This document shows positions 1 to 41,839 of a stretch of DNA of 64,000 nucleotides, piece after piece. Location: sequence record PV231353.1; one strand, given 5' to 3'. The position numbers were made by a program, and so were the translations under genes. Positions within the stretch are counted from its first letter, which is position 1. Every line of letters starts with the position of its first letter. The notes under the pieces were generated by a model, which searched no databases, was not told the DNA's origin, and worked only from the letters and a program-made list of their open reading frames with translations.

Positions 1-3000
1 GGGCCGAACTGGGCAAGGAACTGGGCAAGGACTGGGGCAAGGCCCTGGACTACGCGGGCACGCGCCAGTCGATCGTCAACGGCGCCCTGAAGTCGGCGGC
101 CGGCGACAGCGCCACCCCGCAGGGAGCCTCCGACAAATTGACCGAGGCGGCCCTGGCGCAGATGAAGGCCGCCGACCAGCAGGCCCTCGCCGCCGCCGAC
201 CTGAAGGACGCCACGGCGAACTTCAAGAAGGACCTGGAGCCGCTCAACTTCAACGACCTCTTCAAGCGCGCCTCGGCCCTGGCTGATGGTAGCTTCGCAC
301 GCACCGCCGCCGCGTCCAAGCCGGGCGGCGTGATGGCGTCGCCGGCCGTGGCGACCCAACAGACCGCCGCCACCATCAAGACCGTCATGGCCTCGATGGG
401 CGATCGCGTGTACGCGACGGCTGGTCAGCACCTCGGACAGACCGAGGCCAAGGATGCGGCGTCGCTGCAAGCCTACTTCAAGGCCAACGGCGTCACCATC
501 GACCCCAAGAAGCTCTCCTGGTGCGCGGCCTTCGTCAACGCGGTCCTGGCCCAGAACGGGCTCTCGGGCTCGGGCTCGCTGGCGGCTTCGTCCTTCAAGG
601 ACTATGGCGACGAGGTCTCGCGCACTGACGCCCGCAAGGGCGACATCGTCGTCCTCAAGCCCCAGGCGGCGGGCGCCACCGGTCACGTCGGCTTCCTCGA
701 CGGCTTTGACCGTCACGGCAACGTGCGCGTCCTGGGCGGCAACCAAGGCGCGGCCGGCGGCGGCGGCGTCAACGTCTCGACCTTCGCCTCCAATCAGGTC
801 GTCTCCTTCCGTCGCACGGGCAGCGGCGGGGCCTCCAACTTCCAGGGCGGCGGCATCACCGAGGCCCAGGGCGAAGAAGGCGGTTCGCTGTACGAACGTC
901 GGATGAATATGGTCAAGGCGCTTGGCACGATCACGGGCCAAGCCTCGCCTGCTGCCGACGCCATTTCTGAGTATCAATCGTCTCTCGAAAAGCTCCGTGA
1001 CGTCCTGGTGTTCGAAGAAGGACTGGCTAAGAAGGTGGGTCCGGAGTTCCAGTCCATCTTCAACGCCAAGGTCCTGGAAGAGACGGTCGCCGCCCAGAAG
1101 AAGTGGAACCGCTCGATCGTCGAGGCGCTCAACCCGATCGCCAAGGAATCCCGGACCCTGGCCGAGGCCAACGACGTTCTGCAACTGCGCGCCAAGGGCC
1201 TGTCGCAGGAAGCCGACTGGCAAGAGCGCCTGACCGAACTGCGCAACTCCGGCATCAATGTCGACCTGATGCAGGACGAGGCCAAGTGGACCCAGTACCT
1301 GAACGAGTTGAAGAAGCAGGGCCTGGAGATCGACGTCAAGGCCCTGCAACTGAAGCCGGACGAACTGCGCTACCAGCAGGGCCGCGCCGAGGCGCTCCAG
1401 GCTGAACTCGACCTGACCAAGGCGCTGAACGACGCCAAGCTGGCGGGCATCGCCCGCACCGGTTCCAGCTATGACCGCACCCTGTCGGGCCTCGTCGCCG
1501 GCAAGGGCCGCGACGGCGAGACGCTCGACCAGACCCGTCAGCGTCTGGCGGGCTCGGTCGGCAGCGACGGCCGCAGCGCGCTGGAAGCCCTGCAAGAGCA
1601 GGCCGGCGTGATGGAAGGCTCGCGCATGGCCGACGTCAAGGCCAGCATGCAGTCGCAGCTTGAGATCATGCGCGAGAGCGCGCGCCTCAACAACACCCAG
1701 CGCGGCATCTACGACGACTACCGCAATATCCTGGGCGAACTGCTGAACAAGCAGGGCGCCTCGCTGAAGGAATTGCTGGACTCGGCCGACGAGGAGACCA
1801 AGCGTCTCGCCCAGTCGTTCGTCCGCGCCAAGGCGGACTTCGAAAACCCGCCCGGCTTCCAGAAGTGGGCCGACTCCCTGGAGCCGCTGGACAAGCGCCT
1901 CCAGGACATCAAGGCCAACTTCCTCGACAACTTCTCCGGCGGCATCACCGATGCGCTGCTGGGTGAGAAGGTCGACTGGAAGGCGATGCTGCACGATACC
2001 TTCAAGCAGATGCTGCGCGCCCAGGTCGATGAGGGTCTGAAGAGCCTCACCTACAAGCTGCTCGGCCAAGGTGGCGACCAGGGCGCGGCCCAAACCCCCG
2101 AAGCCCAGGCGCTAGTCTCGGCGGCCGATGTCCAATTGCAAGCCGGCAACAGCCTGCAACAAGCCGCCGCCAGCCTGATGCAGGCGGCTCAGACCACCGC
2201 GACCGCCGGCGCGGGCGGCGGCCTGGGCGTGATGACGGGCGGACCCGCGATGGGCGGCCTGGGCGGTCTCCTGGGCGGTGGCGGCGCCATGGGTGGCGGT
2301 GGCGGCCTCGGCGCGCTCGCCGGCGTCCTGGGCGGCGGCGATGGCACGGCGACCAACCCCTTCTCGATCGCCGACTCGATCCTCTCGCCGCTGGTCGTCG
2401 ACCAAACGGGCGGACCGGGCTTCCAGGCGGCGGGCGCGGCGCTCCAGGGGCTGAACATCACCCCGCCGGGTGGCGGCGGCTTCCTGTCGGGCCTGGGCTC
2501 GATGTTCCAAGGCGGCCTGGGCTCGATGCTGCAAGGCGCCCTGAGCTTCGCCGGTCCGCTGCTGGGCGGCCTGCTGACGGGCGGCAAGAAGAGCCCCAAG
2601 ACGCCGGCGAGCTACCGCATGCCGGGCGGCGTCATCGGTCAGGCGAGCACCAACAGCGTCTCGGGCCGCGTGGTTGGCCCCAAGCAAAACCTGATCGGCT
2701 CTCTGGCGAACCTGGGCTTCCAGTTGTTCGCGGGCGGCATGGGCGGCGGCGGCGGCCTGATGAGCATGTTCGGCATGGGCGGCGCTGGCGGCGCGGGAAG
2801 CTTCATTGGCTTCAAGGAAGGCGGCCTGACGGGCGCGCCGGTCAACCGTTATACCGTCTCCTCGCTGGGCTCGATGTTCGCCAACGCTCCGCACTATGCC
2901 GAGGGCACCAGCAACACCAAGCTGGCCAATGGCGGCATGCCGGCGATCGTCCACCCGGACGAGGCGGTGATCCCGCTGTCGCGTGGCCGCAACGTCCCGG

Positions 3001-3167
3001 TGGAACTGAAGGGCGCCGGCGGCGGAAGCTCGACCACCGTGGTCTCGCCGATCACCGTCTACGCCAACGACGTCGACAGCTTCCGCCCGGCCCAGGCGCA
3101 GATCGCCCGCAAGCAGAACCGCACCCTGCGCCGCGCGGCCTTGCGCAACGCCTCGATGGTCAACTAG
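1..3167 (+). CDS. Tail tape measure protein, 3' part (5'-truncated by window), with embedded CHAP/TIGR02594-like peptidoglycan hydrolase domain
   Basis: Frame open from position 3. Ala/Gly/Leu-rich helical sequence with typical C-terminal 'GFKEGG...HYAEG...AIVHPDEAVIPL' segment; internal 'SWCAAFVN...GDIVV...GHVGF...LGGNQ' motif; lies directly upstream of distal tail gene. Confidence 0.9.
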   Translation, partial: AELGKELGKDWGKALDYAGTRQSIVNGALKSAAGDSATPQGASDKLTEAALAQMKAADQQALAAADLKDATANFKKDLEPLNFNDLFKRASALADGSFARTAAASKPGGVMASPAVATQQTAATIKTVMASMGDRVYATAGQHLGQTEAKDAASLQAYFKANGVTIDPKKLSWCAAFVNAVLAQNGLSGSGSLAASSFKDYGDEVSRTDARKGDIVVLKPQAAGATGHVGFLDGFDRHGNVRVLGGNQGAAGGGGVNVSTFASNQVVSFRRTGSGGASNFQGGGITEAQGEEGGSLYERRMNMVKALGTITGQASPAADAISEYQSSLEKLRDVLVFEEGLAKKVGPEFQSIFNAKVLEETVAAQKKWNRSIVEALNPIAKESRTLAEANDVLQLRAKGLSQEADWQERLTELRNSGINVDLMQDEAKWTQYLNELKKQGLEIDVKALQLKPDELRYQQGRAEALQAELDLTKALNDAKLAGIARTGSSYDRTLSGLVAGKGRDGETLDQTRQRLAGSVGSDGRSALEALQEQAGVMEGSRMADVKASMQSQLEIMRESARLNNTQRGIYDDYRNILGELLNKQGASLKELLDSADEETKRLAQSFVRAKADFENPPGFQKWADSLEPLDKRLQDIKANFLDNFSGGITDALLGEKVDWKAMLHDTFKQMLRAQVDEGLKSLTYKLLGQGGDQGAAQTPEAQALVSAADVQLQAGNSLQQAAASLMQAAQTTATAGAGGGLGVMTGGPAMGGLGGLLGGGGAMGGGGGLGALAGVLGGGDGTATNPFSIADSILSPLVVDQTGGPGFQAAGAALQGLNITPPGGGGFLSGLGSMFQGGLGSMLQGALSFAGPLLGGLLTGGKKSPKTPASYRMPGGVIGQASTNSVSGRVVGPKQNLIGSLANLGFQLFAGGMGGGGGLMSMFGMGGAGGAGSFIGFKEGGLTGAPVNRYTVSSLGSMFANAPHYAEGTSNTKLANGGMPAIVHPDEAVIPLSRGRNVPVELKGAGGGSSTTVVSPITVYANDVDSFRPAQAQIARKQNRTLRRAALRNASMVN

Positions 3168-3250
3168 CTGTCACCCACGACAGTCGTGAATCTTGACGTT
3201 CCTGGATGATCGTGGCATCCAGGGACACCTCCTTTCATGGTTAATGCCCG

Positions 3251-3901
3251 ATGCCGAGCTTCCACGACGTCCTGTTCCCCGAGACCATCAGCTACGGCTC
3301 GTCCGGTGGTCCGAAGTTCAAGACCACGATCTTCCAGGCCGACAGCGGCTTTGAGCAGCGCAACAAGGACTGGAGCGACATCCGCTGCGAGTACGATGTC
3401 GCCCAGTCGATCCGCTCGACCGAGGACATGGACGAGCTTCGCGCCTTCTTCATGGCCCGCAACGGCCGCGCCCACGGTTTCCGCTACAAGGACTGGGGCG
3501 ACTTCCGCCTCAAGAACCAGTTGATCGGCGTCGGCGACGGCGTCACCAAGGTCTTCCAGATCGTCAAGACCTATACCAGCGTCGCCCACGACGGCACCGA
3601 GTACACCTACACCCGCACGATCCGCAAGCCCAAGTGGGACTCGATCGCCGGCGTCAAGGTCGGCGCCGTGGTTCAGGTCGCCCCGACCAACTACGAGGTC
3701 GACTATTCGACCGGCCTGATGACCTTCGTCACCGCGCCGCCGGCCGACGCCCCGGTCACCATTGGCCTGGGCGAGTTCCACGTCCCCGTCCGCTTCGACA
3801 CCGACTTCATGGACGTCACCCAGGAGTTCTGGATGCGCGAGACGTGGCCCAACATCCCGATCGTCGAAATCCGTGACTGGCAAGAGGCCCTGACGCCGTG
3901 A
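3251..3901 (+). CDS. Distal tail protein (DUF2460/TIGR02217, GTA-like)
   Basis: 'FHDVLFP..ISYGSSGGP.F.T.I...SG.EQRN..W' and 'VPVRFDTD' motifs; synteny. Confidence 0.9.
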   Translation: MPSFHDVLFPETISYGSSGGPKFKTTIFQADSGFEQRNKDWSDIRCEYDVAQSIRSTEDMDELRAFFMARNGRAHGFRYKDWGDFRLKNQLIGVGDGVTKVFQIVKTYTSVAHDGTEYTYTRTIRKPKWDSIAGVKVGAVVQVAPTNYEVDYSTGLMTFVTAPPADAPVTIGLGEFHVPVRFDTDFMDVTQEFWMRETWPNIPIVEIRDWQEALTP

Positions 3902-5523
3902 AATCCGTCCCCGATGACCTGATGGCGCACCTCCAGGAGGAGGTGACCACGCTCGCGACGTGCATCACGATCGTGCGCCAGGACGGCAAGGCGTTCTTCA
4001 TGACCGACCACGATCGGCCGATCAAGTTCGAGAACCAGACCTACGTCCCCTACGACTCCTACCAGCGCACGTCGATCCTGATGTCGTCGGAACTGGAAGT
4101 CGACACCGCCGACATCACCGCCTTCCTGACCTCGAACGGGGTGACGCGCGACGACGTGGCCTCGGGCCTGTTCGACTACGCCGCGATCAAGGTCCAGTTG
4201 CTGAACTACGAGCGGCCCGAGGACGGGGCGATCCTGCTCCGCAAGGGCACGTTCGGCGAAGTGACCATGAACCAGGACGAGACCTTCTCGGCCGAAATCC
4301 GGGGCATGACCCAGGTCCTGACCTACCGGGTCGGGGAGACCTACGCGCCCGAGTGCCGGGCCGACCTGGGCGATCGCCGCTGCAAGATCGGCCTGATGCC
4401 TGAGGAGTGGCAGGCCAACAAATACTACGGCCTCGACGCCTGCGTGCTGGGCGAACTCGTCGCCCCTACGTCGTTCGTCAATCCCGTGGTCGTCAACGGC
4501 AACTTCGAGGACGGCGCCCTCAACGCCGTCGTCACCGCGCCGACGGGCTGGGTGGCCTATGGCGATCCGACCAGCCGCTGGGTCTACAAGCACGACTGGT
4601 ACAATCTGTCGCGCCCGCAGGTCGGCAACCAGTTCATCGCCGCCACCCGCACCTCGATCTCCGACAAGCAGGAAGTCGCGGGCATCTACCAGGACATCAA
4701 CCTCATTTCCGCCGGCGTGCCCGCCGCCGCGATCGACGGCGGCCTCTGCCGCGTGCGCTACAAGTCCTTCGCCGCCTGCCTCAACAACCGCGCCCAGTCG
4801 CGCGAACGCCTGACCTGCATCAAGGCTGACGGCTCGGTGGAGACGATCTGGGACACCGGCGAGATCAAGTACCCCGAGGACCGCTGGATCGCGGTCAACG
4901 CCGATGACATCCTGATCCCGGCCGGCACGCGTGTCCTGCGCATCGACCTGTGGTCCAAGAAACGCAGCGTCCACGAGGAGGGCGCGGCCTATGATGGGAT
5001 CAGCCTGTCGATCAACCTGCCGGCAGGCACCGCCGGCAACGCCCATGTCTATGGCGGGGTGATGTTCAAGTGCATCCAGGCGGGGATCAGCGGCGGCACC
5101 CAGCCGGCCTGGACTAACGAACTGGGCGCCACCTATACCGACGGCACGGTCATCTGGCAGTGCGTGGCCAACTACAAGAAGGTGGGCACGGTCGCCACGG
5201 TCGCCTCCAACAAGTCCTTCACCTCGACCGACATCACCGAGCCGGCCGGTCACTACGACGGCGGCGTGCTCTACTGGGAAACCGGCCGCAACGCCGGACG
5301 CGCCCAGGAGATCAAGACCTGGGCCGCCAACCTCTTCACGCTTTTCCAGCGCACCTACTATCCAATCACGGCGGGCGACCGCTTCGTGGTCTATCCCGGC
5401 TGCGACAAGCGCCGCGCCACCTGTGCCGACAAGTTCCACAATATCCACAATTTCCGCGCCGAGCCCGACGTGCCCGGTCAGGACATCTACTACCGCACGC
5501 CCAACGCTCCGGAGCAGGAATGA
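3898..5523 (+). CDS. Baseplate hub protein (DUF2163/BR0599-like) with large internal insertion
   Basis: N-terminal 'TLATC..I.R.DG...TDHD..I' and C-terminal 'GCDK...TC..KF.N..NFR.EP.VPG' motifs; GTGA overlap with upstream gene. Confidence 0.88.
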   Translation: MKSVPDDLMAHLQEEVTTLATCITIVRQDGKAFFMTDHDRPIKFENQTYVPYDSYQRTSILMSSELEVDTADITAFLTSNGVTRDDVASGLFDYAAIKVQLLNYERPEDGAILLRKGTFGEVTMNQDETFSAEIRGMTQVLTYRVGETYAPECRADLGDRRCKIGLMPEEWQANKYYGLDACVLGELVAPTSFVNPVVVNGNFEDGALNAVVTAPTGWVAYGDPTSRWVYKHDWYNLSRPQVGNQFIAATRTSISDKQEVAGIYQDINLISAGVPAAAIDGGLCRVRYKSFAACLNNRAQSRERLTCIKADGSVETIWDTGEIKYPEDRWIAVNADDILIPAGTRVLRIDLWSKKRSVHEEGAAYDGISLSINLPAGTAGNAHVYGGVMFKCIQAGISGGTQPAWTNELGATYTDGTVIWQCVANYKKVGTVATVASNKSFTSTDITEPAGHYDGGVLYWETGRNAGRAQEIKTWAANLFTLFQRTYYPITAGDRFVVYPGCDKRRATCADKFHNIHNFRAEPDVPGQDIYYRTPNAPEQE

Positions 5524-16600: not shown

Positions 16601-17089
16601 ATGAGTCTGTTCGGTGTCATCGCCCTGGCCTGGAAGTTCTTCCTCAACCCGGCCGTCATGGGCGTCGTCTTCGCGGCGATCGCCGCCTTGACGGGATTGT
16701 GGCTGCTGGGCGGCCCGGTCCTGTTCTGGAAGGTGGTGCGCGACGCCCGGCTCTGGCTCGTCGTCGCCTGCGCGGCGGTGATCTTCGGCTACGCCCATCT
16801 CCAGACCAAGCTCGAAAAGGCCGAGCAGCGCCTGGAGGAGATCGCCGACCAGAAGCAGGCTCATGACGACGGCCAGGAGGTCGTCAAGAACAACATCAAA
16901 AAGCAGGTCAAGCGCGCCAAGCAGGCGGCCAAGTACCAAGAGGTTATTCACGATGCCCCGACTGGCGAAAAGCTCGACGCGCTCCTCGACGAGTTCGCGC
17001 GTGATCAAGGCGGTGCTGCTCCCGTCCCTGGTGATGCTCAGCCTGACCCTGGCGGCGTGTCAAACCGTCCCGGTCGGATTCTCCCCTGA
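16601..17089 (+). CDS. Inner-membrane spanin candidate (Rz-like)
   Basis: N-terminal TM helices then coiled coil; follows endolysin and overlaps a lipoprotein gene. Confidence 0.65.
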   Translation: MSLFGVIALAWKFFLNPAVMGVVFAAIAALTGLWLLGGPVLFWKVVRDARLWLVVACAAVIFGYAHLQTKLEKAEQRLEEIADQKQAHDDGQEVVKNNIKKQVKRAKQAAKYQEVIHDAPTGEKLDALLDEFARDQGGAAPVPGDAQPDPGGVSNRPGRILP

Positions 17090-17342
17090 CGACCTCTATC
17101 CCAAGGAACTGCGGACCTGCGCGCCCGCGCCGCAGGTTCCCCCGCGCCCGGCGCCCGGCGCGCCCCGCCCTGAGGACGTCCAGGCCGGCTACGTCAAGGA
17201 TGACCATCTCGCCGGCGCCGACTGCCGCGACAAGGTCGAATCCTGGAACGAGCGGGCTGTCAAGTACGAGGCCCAGTACAAGGCCATGAACGCCGGCCCG
17301 GTCGGCAAGTTCTTCGGCAAGCTCAAGGGAAAGACGCAGTGA
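17001..17342 (+). CDS. Outer-membrane lipoprotein spanin (Rz1-like)
   Basis: GTG start inferred; signal peptide with lipobox 'LAAC'; Pro-rich; overlaps the i-spanin 3' end in another frame. Confidence 0.75.
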   Translation: MIKAVLLPSLVMLSLTLAACQTVPVGFSPDDLYPKELRTCAPAPQVPPRPAPGAPRPEDVQAGYVKDDHLAGADCRDKVESWNERAVKYEAQYKAMNAGPVGKFFGKLKGKTQ

Positions 17343-17823: not shown

Positions 17824-17997
17824 ATGCGCGAAGGCTTCATGCTGGAAGGCTATGGCGGTCTGAAGATCGGTCCGGGCGGCGGGGCTGGCCCGTACACGAC
17901 CTTGGGCGACGGCGGCTCGGAAGGCTGCATCCCGGTCAAGGACGACATCTCCGGCGACAGCGGGACCGAGATCATCTCCCCGCTCGGCTATGGCTAA
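17824..17997 (+). CDS. Small Gly-rich hypothetical protein
   Basis: GGAG RBS upstream of ATG 17824; codon bias like neighbours. Confidence 0.55.
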   Translation: MREGFMLEGYGGLKIGPGGGAGPYTTLGDGGSEGCIPVKDDISGDSGTEIISPLGYG

Positions 17998-18028
17998 CCT
18001 TGCGACATAACGTCGCATGTCATGATCC

Positions 18029-18057
18029 TTGACAGAACGACGATCTTCGAGTATGGT
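18029..18057 (+). promoter_or_regulatory. Sigma70-type promoter
   Basis: TTGACA-N17-TATGGT. Confidence 0.75.
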
Positions 18058-18061
18058 CGCG

Positions 18062-18355
18062 GCTCTTCGACGGCATCCCACCGTCACCCATGGCTCGCGA
18101 CCCACCGTTCGCAGGGAGATGCTCGCGACCAAGGCGGTAGCCGGAACGACGCTAGGCTGCAAAGCCAAGCCTCCGGAACACGCAGCAGCCGGCTGGAACG
18201 CTAGGCCGTTACGTCCAAACGGGGCCAGGACCTGTGAGGCGAAAGCCGAAAGGCCCCACCACCCGACAAGGGTTCACGCGTGATGCGGAAGAGGGACGTC
18301 AGTCCTGAAGTGTCTCAGGTGCAGAAGGCCCGCCGGTTTCCCGGCGGGCCTTTTT
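18062..18355 (+). ncRNA. Unassigned ~290-nt structured RNA
   Basis: Own promoter and terminator; 5'/3' pairing CTCTTC/GAAGAG; GNRA hairpins; loop ACGTCC complementary to GGACGT. Confidence 0.6.
18326..18355 (+). terminator. Rho-independent terminator
   Basis: aggcccgccgg-tttc-ccggcgggcct followed by T-run. Confidence 0.9.
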
Positions 18356-18374
18356 CTGGTCTGGGGACTAGGAC

Positions 18375-19175
18375 TTAGTCGACCGCTTCCAGGCGCCGGC
18401 GCTTGGGCGCGCTCGCCGGCAGGGACGGGGCCAGATCGCCGATCTTGCCGACCACCTTGCCGAGGAACACGATCCGCTTGGGATCAACGTCGACATGATC
18501 CTTCAGGTCGGCGCTATAGACCCGGAACGCGCCGCCCTTGGAGGGACGGGTGACGTGCGCGACCTGCATGACCTTGTCCAGGCCGTAGACGAACTCGCCG
18601 CCGGCGGTGCTGGGCTCGACATCGCGGCGGACCACCGCCATGTCGCCCGGCTTGAGGCCAGGGGCGAAGTCGTGGATCGGGGCCAGGGCCAGATCGGTCG
18701 GCTCGGCCTCGAAGCGCTCGCGAAGCCAGTCGGGATCGAGGTTCCAGGTCCGGGCGCGCTTGAACTCGCCAAGGCGGCCTTTGAAGGTCACTTCCTCGAC
18801 CGGGTTGGGCGCGCCGACCCCGAAGGTGATGTATTCGGGCGTCGTCTTCAGGACGTGGGCGATCTGCTCCAGCACGTCGATGTGCGGCTTGACGCTGTCG
18901 GACTCGTACATGATGTACGCCGTGCGCGCCAGCGGCCGGCGCTCGCCCGCCTGCTTCGGCTCCCAGCCCGGTTTGGTGCTGGAGTCCTTGCGGGAATTGC
19001 TCTGCTGGGTCAGGAAGATCATCTTGGCGACCTGTTCCTGAGTCAGGTCGAGGGCCTTCCGGCAGGCGGTGATCCGCTGCCCGATGGTCTGAGGATGCGC
19101 AAGATCGGCATCCTTGTGGATCAAGGAACGAGCGCGATGGGGCACCATCGGCTTCAGTTCGGCCACGGCTTGCAT
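18375..19175 (-). CDS. XRE-family HTH regulator with S24-like C-terminal domain
   Basis: 'IGQRI...RK.L.LTQEQVA' HTH, 'LEQIA.VL.TTPEYI.FG', C-terminal 'GKVVG'; GGAGGAG RBS. Confidence 0.75.
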   Translation of the reverse strand: MQAVAELKPMVPHRARSLIHKDADLAHPQTIGQRITACRKALDLTQEQVAKMIFLTQQSNSRKDSSTKPGWEPKQAGERRPLARTAYIMYESDSVKPHIDVLEQIAHVLKTTPEYITFGVGAPNPVEEVTFKGRLGEFKRARTWNLDPDWLRERFEAEPTDLALAPIHDFAPGLKPGDMAVVRRDVEPSTAGGEFVYGLDKVMQVAHVTRPSKGGAFRVYSADLKDHVDVDPKRIVFLGKVVGKIGDLAPSLPASAPKRRRLEAVD

Positions 19176-39490: not shown

Positions 39491-39579
39491 TGGAGCTTCG
39501 GGAGGGACTCGAACCCTCATAGGTGTTCCCACCAGCAGAGATTTGCAATCCCGCGCCTAACCTCTCAGTCCACCGAAGC
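39491..39579 (-). tRNA. tRNA-Cys(GCA) with long variable arm
   Basis: 7-bp acceptor GCTTCGG/CCGAAGC, U73, encoded CCA, T-loop TTCGAGT, anticodon loop TTGCAAA, variable stem GGTG-GGAA-CACC. Confidence 0.9.
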
Positions 39580-39804: not shown

Positions 39805-40676
39805 CCGATGGGCTGAGACTACACCCATCAGCAATCCCGCTTCGAGGATTATTCCCCAGGTGCGACCCCAGGTATTCCCTCGACGTCCACCAGACCCCTT
39901 GCGGTAGTCCAGTCCGAGATCATCGCCGCCGTTCTTGCGCACCCCGAAGGGATTGCGGGTCTGGCGTTTGACCCATCATGGCGAACTACTCGACAGTTCC
40001 TTCCCCGCTGGGCTTGCGACCCACTCACCGGCGCTAACCGGCTGACGAAGCTCTTCCTATCGACACCTCGCGGGCTTGCGACCCTTGAGATGACTCCGTT
40101 ACCCGAAGGCCGGAGCATTTGGCGACTTACGTCCGCCACTGGACCAGTCTTTGCGTTTTTCATCGAAGCGGGGATTGAACCCGCGACCGACAGCTTAAGA
40201 GGCTGTTGCACTACCACTGTGCTATTCGCAAACCCACCAAGACGTGCTGGTCCAGTTGTTCCCAGAGCTTTTGACCCCAGAAATGCAACACGCCTCATAT
40301 CTTTCGCCTTGCGGGCTACTCGACTGCTCTTCAGGACCCCGTCTCCCCCAACCTTTCGGCCAGGATGCCCAGCACCCCTCGAACTGAAGCAAAGCTCTTC
40401 ACCGCGAAGTGTCGAACCCTGCAACCCAAACGGTTATCCGTACTCCCTAGACACGCTTGCACGGGATAGTCCGCTTGCGACGGACTGGCGGTTAAAGCCT
40501 CGGAGTTACCCCGGCCCCGCCTTGTCTCCCACGGTCTTCAGGTCTATCCCCTTTTGCAAGAGGCGGCCAGCTTCCCAGCCCGGACCCGTCGGCTTCCTCT
40601 GTCCTCTTGCGAGGTCGGGCGGCCTATGGGAGACCGTCCCTGTCACCCCGTCGCCGGGGCTTTCGTCAGAAGCGAC
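39805..40676 (-). ncRNA. GOLLD-like giant ornate RNA
   Basis: About 870 nt between a promoter and a terminator; many GNRA-capped hairpins on the minus strand; 3' blocks GAGUAGUUCG, AGGGAAUACC, GAAUAAUCC, GUGUAGUCUCAGC; tRNA body inserted in the middle. Confidence 0.7.
40161..40231 (-). tRNA. tRNA-Lys(CUU)-like body embedded in the GOLLD-like RNA (degenerate acceptor, no CCA)
   Basis: Intact D arm GCAC/GTGC, anticodon arm ACAGC-CTCTTAA-GCTGT, T arm GCGGG-TTCAATC-CCCGC; only 4 contiguous acceptor pairs. Confidence 0.8.
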
Positions 40677-40799: not shown

Positions 40800-41175
40800 G
40801 AAATCGTTGTAATTCGGACAACGGAACTGGCGGCAAGACAGGGGTGCGAATCCCCTCGCCTCCACCATCGACGCCCGGCGCTGGGAGTACGCGACTCCTG
40901 GGCAGGGAGTGTTACCCTGGCGGGCTGCGGCCCGAGCCAAAGGTAGCCGGGCGTCGTTGATGGGGGCGACTAGCTTTCGATTGGCGCTCGGGACTGAAAG
41001 ACGCAACGGTGGGTGACCTCCACATCGGCTTGCCGGTGATCGGGTCAGGCAACAGTAAATGTCGCCGCCAATGACAACGACGTCGTGGCTTTCGCCTCGG
41101 CTCGTGAAGCCATCGCCGCCTAATAAGCGGTAGAGGAGCCCGCCGGGAGCTTGGCAACAGAATCCCGGCAACCCC
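40800..41175 (+). ncRNA. ssrA: Two-piece (permuted) alphaproteobacterial-type tmRNA
   Basis: Acceptor piece ends CGCCTCCACCA (40867); coding piece starts GGGGGCG (40962), giving G3:U70; tag frame 41061-41123 VAANDNDVVAFASAREAIAA*; inter-piece helix CGGCAAG/CTTGCCG. Confidence 0.93.
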
Positions 41176-41304: not shown

Positions 41305-41383
41305 CGCGGGGTAGAGGAGTCCGGTTGTCCTCGTCTGGCTCATAACCAGGAGATCGTGGGTTCAAATCCCACTCCCGCTCCCA
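41305..41383 (+). tRNA. tRNA with CAU anticodon (Met; fMet-like C1:U72 mismatch)
   Basis: Cloverleaf, anticodon loop CTCATAA, encoded CCA; lacks the three consecutive anticodon-stem G-C pairs of initiators. Confidence 0.9.
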
Positions 41384-41754: not shown

Positions 41755-41839
41755 GGTACGGTGGCTCGACAGGTAAGGCATCGGCCTCATAAGCCGAGGG
41801 TTCGTCCCAATCCTGGTTCAAATCCAGGTCGTACCTCCA
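41755..41839 (+). tRNA. tRNA with CAU anticodon (Met or Ile2) and extended variable arm
   Basis: Acceptor GGTACGG/TCGTACC, U73, CCA; anticodon arm TCGGC-CTCATAA-GCCGA; 14-nt variable region GGGTTCGTCCCAAT. Confidence 0.88.

Follow-up and report, generated by a model that had tools for sequence, protein, structure and literature searches.

The stretch of DNA analysed here, a window of 64,000 nucleotides (nt), stems from the phiCbK-like Caulobacter phage RBC57 (PV231353.1), and its positions 18029-18355 almost certainly constitute a genuine gene for a structured non-coding RNA (ncRNA). At a probability of roughly 0.5, we regard it as a stand-alone gene whose RNA, about 290 nt long, founds an undescribed family in the phiCbK-like phages (Dolichocephalovirinae) and acts in trans via a partner. 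Judged by comparison of the sequences, the fold is under purifying selection and the locus is an independent ncRNA gene; covariation of the RNA combined with a dedicated consensus promoter implies a selected function across this subfamily of jumbo phages. Novel are the family and the fold, not a demonstrated mechanism. phiCbK is a classic laboratory phage of Caulobacter crescentus, a well-developed bacterial model, and since phage and host are easily manipulated the function is directly testable. These phages are already rich in RNA genes (tRNAs, tmRNA, GOLLD and, in relatives, Y-RNA-like RNAs), and even in a minor role the RNA would supply databases and genome annotation with a new RNA family of well-supported secondary structure.

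The gene sits within a gap of 377 bp (17998-18374), for which the deposited records of 26 phiCbK-like genomes hold no annotation beyond a predicted terminator, and the RNA region was found in all 26 of them; CcrSwift, Karma, Magneto and phiCbK (genus Shapirovirus, subfamily Dolichocephalovirinae) are 96-98% identical to the window. More distant loci were located via the convergent gene for a helix-turn-helix (HTH) regulator that borders the gap: syntenic loci of other Dolichocephalovirinae were fetched, and metagenomic loci were obtained with a protein-profile scan and from contigs encoding HTH homologues in a large protein collection. Searching with an nhmmer profile added a homologue from Bajun, a Brevundimonas phage (E = 2e-11), and a soil contig (L031) was recognized by eye from the shared blocks AUGGCUC, CCAAAGCGGU, ACACGC and the UGGAAC hairpin. 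With a covariance model of the 135-nt core (R1, rebuilt from the wider set as R2) the core was found in nine lineages, namely the phiCbK-likes, Bajun and seven metagenomic contigs (Table 1), so that the collection of homologues proposed in the original prediction did yield relatives with a conserved, covarying fold. In all members the RNA strand is convergent to the HTH gene and an intrinsic terminator adjoins the stop codon of that gene. The other side, where the flank suffices, holds small convergent-strand open reading frames (ORFs), and lysis genes were identified beside the RNA in the phiCbK-likes, in Bajun (spanin and holin) and in L182 (M15-type peptidase).

The family signature consists of three serial hairpins (P1, P2 and P3), GGCU...(A)CCAA-N-CGGUA...ACACG...UGGRA, convergent to an XRE/cI-like gene, and the RNA of the window conforms to it. 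in P1, a GG/CC base is followed by a bulged C and by a stem that varies but begins with U-A; the junction between P1 and P2 reads CAA plus one purine; P2 combines a conserved base helix, RCGGU/AC(A)CGY with a bulged A, with a variable hairpin on top; and after a spacer of 3-5 nt P3 follows, whose loop is UGGAA in 13 of the 14 members and UGGGA in L184. Invariant letters in a 12-sequence alignment are A-N-GGCU, A-C-CAA, CGGUA, ACACG and UGGA-A, from which L184 deviates at several. Complete RNAs comprise at least eight helices and measure from about 290 to more than 450 nt; between core and terminator lie 70 to more than 300 nt that vary and have a structure of their own.

Covariation in the core is extensive. 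In the 14-sequence alignment 96.5% of the cells are paired and 24 of the 35 pairs changed on both sides (52 cells), figures that are somewhat generous; none of 500 column shuffles reached any of the five measures, and sliding the 3' partners by 1-3 columns left 29-40% paired and at most nine pairs changed on both sides. The P1 helix UCGCGA/UCGCGA became UCUUGA/UCAAGA in L154; in P2, CCGGA/UCCGG was replaced by GCAGG/CCUGC and GCG/CGC by ACG/CGU; and at the P2 base a G-C pair turned into A-U in L031 and L160, while L184 has the base helix GUCU/AGAC. Many pairs are G-U (e.g., GC:7 GU:7 at one P3 pair), which would be A-C mismatches on the minus strand, so that the plus strand is the functional one.

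Among the phiCbK-like phages (eight representatives aligned with MAFFT, 87% mean column identity) the core at 18086-18220 is the most conserved segment of the locus, with 88-91% identity to BL10, Rogue and BL57 compared with 52-88% in flanking genes. Within the 3' part (18221-18320) identity falls to 60-64% in BL10 and Rogue, and the hairpins are retained. Here P4 changed from C-G to U-A and from GGC/GCC to GCC/GGC with the loop GAAA becoming UUCG (BL10, Rogue, RBC63). Immediately 5' of the conserved 3' block, a hairpin is present in Bajun and the bertelyviruses as well; the counterpart of the block is GGGUUCACGCGCGAUGCGG in Bajun, with the look-alike GGGUUCACGCGGCGUGCGGUGAAG in bertelyviruses; a mini-hairpin CGC-GUGAU-GCG at 18277-18287 may form within this block.

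The original prediction, a sketch drawn from the single sequence, was partly confirmed in its observations and partly supported in its interpretation, and the fold differs from what it had drawn. Three of its hairpins are present, and the first two covary: GGCU-GCAA-AGCC (18155-18166) becomes GGCC-GUAA-GGUC or GACC-GCAA-GGUC, GGC-GAAA-GCC (18238-18247) becomes GCC-UUCG-GGC, and the stem of (A)CCC-GACAA-GGG(U) (18261-18273) is re-sized to CCUC-GCAA-GAGG in relatives, where a P5 pair scored as unpaired in three of eight and not as compensatory because of an indel in the MAFFT columns. A further hairpin, CCUGA/UCAGG, is broken in three of the eight relatives (BL10 group). The proposed long-range pseudoknot between ACGUCC (18211) and GGACGU (18294) is not supported: the segments are complementary in the window, but there is no compensatory change, two of the six pairs are broken in three to four of eight relatives, and the 3' arm is the 5' strand of a covarying local hairpin, GGAC-GUCA-GUCC (18294-18305), which would need to be melted. 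Pairing of the ends, CUCUUC/GAAGAG (18063-18068/18288-18293), exists in the sequence and is perfect in the phiCbK clade but lacks statistical support, as in the eight phiCbK-likes 83% is paired with no compensatory change and a register slip is needed in the BL10 group; by inspection, a different helix of 7 bp is possible at the equivalent ends in Bajun.

Three further structural proposals were rejected. A long-range helix suggested by RNAalifold (CACGC/GCGUG plus UCCG/CGGA) is invariant and hence uninformative in the phiCbK-likes and is incompatible with P2 and the P2 base helix, for both of which the wider family shows covariation. Kissing of the P1 loop (GUUC) with the P3 loop (GAAC) is not a general feature, since P1 loops are unrelated or tetraloops in L166, L160 and copy 1 of L031. 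A loop E or bulged-G reading of the internal loop GUAG/AACA fails because its 3' strand is not conserved.

The promoter and the terminator of the original prediction both proved real. Promoter sites of such quality are expected 0.1 times by chance (shuffles of a 2.5-kb region), the expression TTGAC[AG]-N16-18-TAnnnT matched at no other place in the window, both hexamers are invariant in the eight phiCbK-like phages, and every family member has an equivalent TTGAC(A/G)-N17 promoter. The terminator folds into a G+C-rich hairpin of 14 bp (about 18323-18352) followed by U5; a simple terminator scan missed this hairpin, a rho-independent terminator is annotated at the homologous site in the GenBank records of CcrSwift and phiCbK, and the stem covaries among relatives. 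Directly upstream of the -35 hexamer lies an inverted repeat with invariant arms and a variable spacer in the eight phiCbK-likes, and repeats of other sequence occupy the same place in Bajun (CGACGC/GCGTCG, L012 about 3684-3705, minus strand), L166 (ACGTCGG/CCGACGT, about 2653-2675, minus strand) and L159 (CGTCAC/GTGACG, about 2725-2750, minus strand); it may represent either a 3' hairpin on the mRNA of the lysis operon or an operator co-evolving with the protein that binds it. In L166, a terminator-like hairpin (GGCCCGCC-GUCCA-GGCGGGCC followed by UUUU, about 2575-2610, minus strand) lies between promoter and core module, so that the module there is perhaps made only via read-through, or a separate short RNA precedes it.

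Positions 18000-18374 had no match at gathering thresholds in Rfam 15 (4227 models, including RNase P, SRP, tmRNA, 6S, riboswitches, ribozymes, GOLLD, ROOL, HEARO and OLE), which agrees with the failure of the original prediction to assign the RNA to RNase P, SRP or tmRNA; at E up to 10 only sub-threshold, terminator-driven matches appeared. Permissive Rfam searches (E up to 0.01 or 1) with the homologues from Bajun, L031, L154, L159, L160 and L166 gave nothing consistent, and ARAGORN found nothing tRNA-like. An RNA at this locus is mentioned neither in the phiCbK genome paper nor in the searchable literature. Because a matching Rfam family, an annotation in the 26 genomes and a mention in the literature are all missing, the RNA is treated as a new family. 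Exact-pattern scans of IMG/VR with two conserved blocks returned isolate genomes and chance matches in coding DNA only; a looser two-block pattern gave more than 119 chance matches with no true member among the matches listed. A three-block pattern matched 14 times in a set of 185,579 bacterial and archaeal species represented by a single genome each, about the number estimated for chance, and none of the 14 matches fits the model; the best of them (L172) lies inside a reading frame that is open across the stretch read. With the Bajun and L154 RNAs as queries, blastn revealed no additional cultured phages. As the scans were empty outside phages, the family looks confined to phiCbK-like phages and uncultured relatives from soil and freshwater.

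It is very improbable that the locus holds no RNA gene but a small protein, encoded by an 84-amino-acid (aa), a 60-aa or a minus-strand 128-aa ORF, or else a DNA element such as a protein-binding array or the 3' untranslated region (UTR) of the lysis operon. The overlapping ORFs of 60-128 aa and the upstream inverted repeat invite this view; however, ORFs of such size arise easily in high-G+C DNA, and all three are interrupted in close relatives. The 84-aa ORF takes the TTG within the -35 hexamer as its start codon and suffers a frameshift or a stop in BL10, BL57 and RBC63, the 60-aa ORF has a stop in Rogue and BL57, and the minus-strand ORF has a stop in phiCbK and a frameshift in BL57. Substitutions lack a third-position bias (variable columns per codon position 18:22:23), so that the locus is without coding capacity and the coding signal sought in the 84-aa frame, which had been named as the finding that would speak against an RNA, was absent. 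Compensatory changes and strand-specific G-U pairs point to an RNA from the plus strand, and all lineages have retained the dedicated promoter. That the RNA is a ribozyme, self-cleaving or of another kind, as the original prediction offered beside a new ncRNA class, is hardly credible: a conserved structured RNA with invariant junction nucleotides is all that speaks for it, thresholds as loose as E = 10 brought no match to a ribozyme family of Rfam 15, the pseudoknot lacks conservation, and neither a repeat, an intron, a retro-element nor a rolling-circle context is associated. What stands of that proposal is the non-coding RNA gene of no described family.

As regards function, a promoter of its own and an intrinsic terminator with a U-tail, the usual build of small RNAs (sRNAs), together with the short conserved unpaired stretches CCAAG, UGGAAC and AAGUGU, would suit a base-pairing sRNA, chaperone-dependent or not, with an exposed segment that pairs host or phage mRNAs and hairpins that lend stability. 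We consider this quite unlikely, as the RNA with its length and at least eight helices is far bigger and more ornate than seed-type sRNAs, its conserved unpaired runs measure at most 5-6 nt and lie in junctions and loops, conservation centres on a structured junction more than on a linear seed of at least 7 nt, and the 3' region where a seed might sit differs between lineages. A sensor resembling a riboswitch, in which the core as an aptamer controls the terminator and read-through antisense into the cI-like gene sets the level of the regulator, much as small antisense RNAs do in lambdoid circuits, would account for the multi-helix junction, the invariant junction nucleotides and the tandem occurrence; such junctions and tandem arrangements are typical of aptamers, e.g., of the tandem glycine riboswitch. 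It would likewise account for the terminator, which lies 20 nt from the HTH stop codon in every lineage, and since Dolichocephalovirinae reportedly persist as episomal pseudolysogens (PMC12195562), a regulator switch would make sense. However, the 70 to more than 300 nt between core and terminator are unlike a normal expression platform, a conserved anti-terminator alternative was not seen, no Rfam aptamer matched, and the terminator looks strong and bidirectional, so that a sensor is decidedly improbable. A cis-regulatory leader is contradicted by the position of the RNA, which is not in the 5' UTR of a same-strand ORF; on the plus strand 3' of it no ORF follows, only the terminator and then the convergent HTH gene. 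Binding of a partner is favoured because conservation resides in the junctions, the bulged A and the hairpin loop and not in a linear seed, because the core can be tandem-duplicated, because nothing lies downstream on the same strand to be regulated and because sister phages hold Ro60 and Y-RNA-like RNAs in the same slot.

In the partner-binding reading, the host RNA polymerase would transcribe the RNA from its consensus-type promoter, and the RNA would act in trans as a folded particle, not by antisense pairing, cis-regulation or catalysis. The partner would bind at the conserved junction and the P3 loop; the 3' domain, which varies, may be a lineage-specific decoration. Should the RNA turn out to bind proteins as decoy or scaffold, or to serve as a sensor, it would be a new class among the few understood phage ncRNAs.

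The comparison with sister phages concerns the same locus. In CcrColossus, CcrPW, seven Brevundimonas jumbo phages and the contigs L162, L163, L164 and L183, the same HTH gene has a TROVE/Ro60 gene on its downstream side (in L014 from position 4512 on); the arrangement in L161 looks alike, with the downstream gene cut by the contig end and without a Pfam call. With the Colossus TROVE protein as query, tblastn matched Colossus and PW alone among Caulobacter phages and the seven Brevundimonas phages, and no TROVE gene was found in the phiCbK-likes, Bajun or the bertelyviruses. The gap before TROVE contains sub-threshold matches to YrlA in CcrColossus, CcrPW and the Brevundimonas phage Gurke (31-42 bits against a gathering threshold of 69). 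These stretches are not annotated as such RNAs, and one overlaps a tRNA-Gln annotation in Colossus; the model of our module had no significant match in the scanned loci of the TROVE group. Bertelyviruses carry tmRNA and tRNAs at this locus, in addition to an unannotated RNA at the same position and in the same promoter context, with the motif look-alikes CCGACUGGAA and GGGUUCACGCG..GUGCGG of the phiCbK RNA and a stem that covaries between BL9 (CCUGCUC.../...GAGCAGG) and C2 (CCCGCCC/GGGCGGG). These bertelyvirus RNAs, possible distant relatives, do not fit the core model (8.7 bits; nhmmer E = 0.75).

Read further, the core could be the RNA half of a new phage ribonucleoprotein (RNP) or decoy system, a functional alternative to the Ro60/Y-RNA cassette, in which the junction and the UGGRA loop would dock a host factor of RNA metabolism or related to tRNA, or a tRNA-like RNA, and redirect RNA turnover or translation. 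We hold this specific form to be unlikely; if true, it would be a new functional class of viral ncRNA in a tractable phage-host pair. The P3 loop U-G-G-R-A fits the five-nucleotide consensus of T-loops, which we take as a lead and not as a result. Pairs of T-loops are docks for the tRNA elbow, and a testable consensus is not given in the source (PMC4810234).

Several points weigh against the reading of a stand-alone RNA acting via a partner. That it works by binding a protein or an RNP, as scaffold or decoy, is drawn by analogy and is tentative, somewhat short of an even chance, and the either/or relation with Ro60/YrlA may reflect merely a hotspot for RNA genes. Single-sequence folding is no better than that of shuffled sequences (z = -1.42), so that the evidence for structure must be comparative. 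The alignment behind the covariation figures was fitted to the model and leans to its structure, and six of its 14 rows are close relatives, which makes the figures generous; nonetheless, the controls fall far short of these figures, and different lineages contribute the compensatory events. The 3' half is weakly conserved beyond the phiCbK-likes, the closing helix CUCUUC/GAAGAG is unproven, and the ends of the transcript, like its abundance, are presumed.

Among known systems, YrlA (RF02553) and the Y RNAs with Ro60/Rsr are likewise phage-borne structured ncRNAs, and Y RNAs are protein-binding scaffold or decoy RNAs, as in our working model. However, YrlA does not match the phiCbK RNA even at E up to 10, a tRNA-like T-arm (GUUCGAAUC) was not seen in it, it has no demonstrated long terminal Ro-binding stem, and its orientation towards the HTH gene is the opposite one. 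GOLLD and ROOL are likewise large, intricately folded phage ncRNAs that were found comparatively and whose function is unknown; they share no sequence or structure match with the phiCbK RNA, which is smaller (about 290 nt, 135-nt core) and, unlike them, narrowly distributed (one phage subfamily plus metagenomic relatives). The phiCbK RNA also resembles the OOP type of phage lambda, a short independent unit convergent to a cI/cII-like gene with its terminator at the 3' end of that gene, but it would run antisense to the HTH coding sequence only upon read-through, is much larger, and has its conserved part in a folded core. With CsrB/RsmZ and 6S it shares the stand-alone gene of the abundant type, GGA hairpin-loop motifs and a variable number of modules (one here, two in L031); none of the Csr/Rsm and 6S models fits the core, the lone CsrC match being on a terminator in L166, the GGA count is near chance by a rough estimate, and the covariation-supported structure has no long duplex with a central bubble as in 6S.

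Table 1. Features of the RNA locus in the window and at homologous loci (L numbers denote loci and contigs compared; bits are covariance-model scores of the core).
Feature	Location	Strand	Remarks
Small ORF closing the lysis cassette	17825-17997	+	annotated in relatives; homologous small ORF precedes the RNA in L031
Inverted repeat TGCGAC-N5-GTCGCA	18002-18018	.	directly upstream of the -35 hexamer
Sigma-70-type promoter TTGACA-N17-TATGGT	18029-18057	+	10/12 consensus positions
Predicted transcript, ~290 nt	18064-18355	+	start placed from the -10 position, 3' end from the terminator U-tract
H1, GACGG-CAUCCCA-CCGUC	18069-18085	+	invariant in 8 phiCbK-likes; GACGG-AAGACCA-CCGUC in L154
Core module P1-P2-P3, three hairpins	18086-18220	+	family-defining; covariance-model matches and covariation
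P1: UGG/CCA base, bulged C, UCGCGA/UCGCGA, CCC/GGG, loop with GUUCGCA	18091-18131	+	compensatory 6/12 pairs (helices 1-2)
P2: GCGGU/AC(A)CGC base, bulged A; CCGGA/UCCGG; GCU/AGC; GGCU-GCAA-AGCC	18134-18183	+	compensatory 13/17 (helices 3-5)
P3: GCCGGC/GCU(A)GGC	18188-18206	+	invariant loop UGGAAC at 18194-18199; compensatory 5/6 (helix 6)
P4: GGGGCC/GGCCCC carrying GGC-GAAA-GCC	18221-18257	+	covaries in BL10, Rogue, RBC63
P5: ACCC-GACAA-GGGU	18261-18273	+	ACCUC-GCAA-GAGGU in BL10 group
Conserved 3' block GGGUUCACGCGUGAUGCGGAAGAG	18270-18293	+	invariant in 8 phiCbK-likes
H6: GGGAC-GUCA-GUCCU	18293-18306	+	compensatory 2/4 pairs (helix 12); GGGCU-GAAA-AGCCC in BL10
Intrinsic terminator, probably bidirectional	18321-18355	+	ends 20 nt short of the convergent gene's stop codon
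Convergent XRE/cI-like HTH regulator gene, phiCbK gp109 homologue	18375-19175	-	Pfam HTH_3 / HTH_19; synteny anchor, outside the RNA
Core, phiCbK-likes	window 18086-18220 and homologous positions		131-160 bits (window itself 139-160, R1/R2)
Core, L154	2413-2543		88-102 bits
Core, Bajun (L012)	3499-3613		68-69 bits
Core, L031, two tandem copies	1146-1261 and 1262-1341		65 and 32 bits
Core, L160	1095-1201		65 bits
Core, L159	2499-2609		63 bits
Core, L166	2430-2539		58 bits
Core, L182	2303-2391		39 bits
Core, L184	2504-2618		33 bits
YrlA-like stretches	L014 3521-3634, 3719-3815; L015 3505-3615; L016 4026-4124		sub-threshold
Bertelyvirus unannotated promoter-to-terminator RNA, convergent to HTH	L017 ~3035-3275; L025 ~2040-2340; L026/L027 ~2170-2475	-	CcrBL9, CcrSC, C2, BL47

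Two observations concern non-coding stretches at related loci. The longer members L154 (about 2255-2300), L160 (about 955-1000) and L184 (about 2395-2430), all on the minus strand, share a second block, CC(N)CCGGAYUAGGCU..G.GGUGUC, and a hairpin GGNC-UGCGG-GNCC in the same 3' domains, both elements being absent in the phiCbK-likes. In the freshwater contig L033, a non-coding stretch that looks structured and finishes with a terminator occupies the same position, convergent to a related HTH gene (1502-1815, minus strand); the contig end truncates it, and neither the core model nor any of the Rfam families searched gave a match to it.

To the left of the gap, the lysis cassette comprises endolysin, spanins, holin and the small ORF ending at 17997, and beyond the HTH gene follow the genes for dUTPase and ribonucleotide reductase. 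An ORF for the outer-membrane spanin, embedded in or overlapping the inner spanin gene (window 16863-17342, plus strand), is annotated in CcrSwift and phiCbK; PV231353.1 is without this annotation, and its entire lysis cassette is labelled 'hypothetical'. About 22 kb from the RNA locus, tmRNA, tRNAs and GOLLD form an island of RNA genes, with a full-length GOLLD RNA (39810-40296, minus strand, 169 bits at a gathering threshold of 150) in which a tRNA match is embedded (40164-40228), a permuted two-piece tmRNA gene (40805-41123, plus strand, 71 bits) and, beside GOLLD, tRNA genes at 41305-41380 and 41755-41836 (plus strand) and at 39494-39579 (minus strand).

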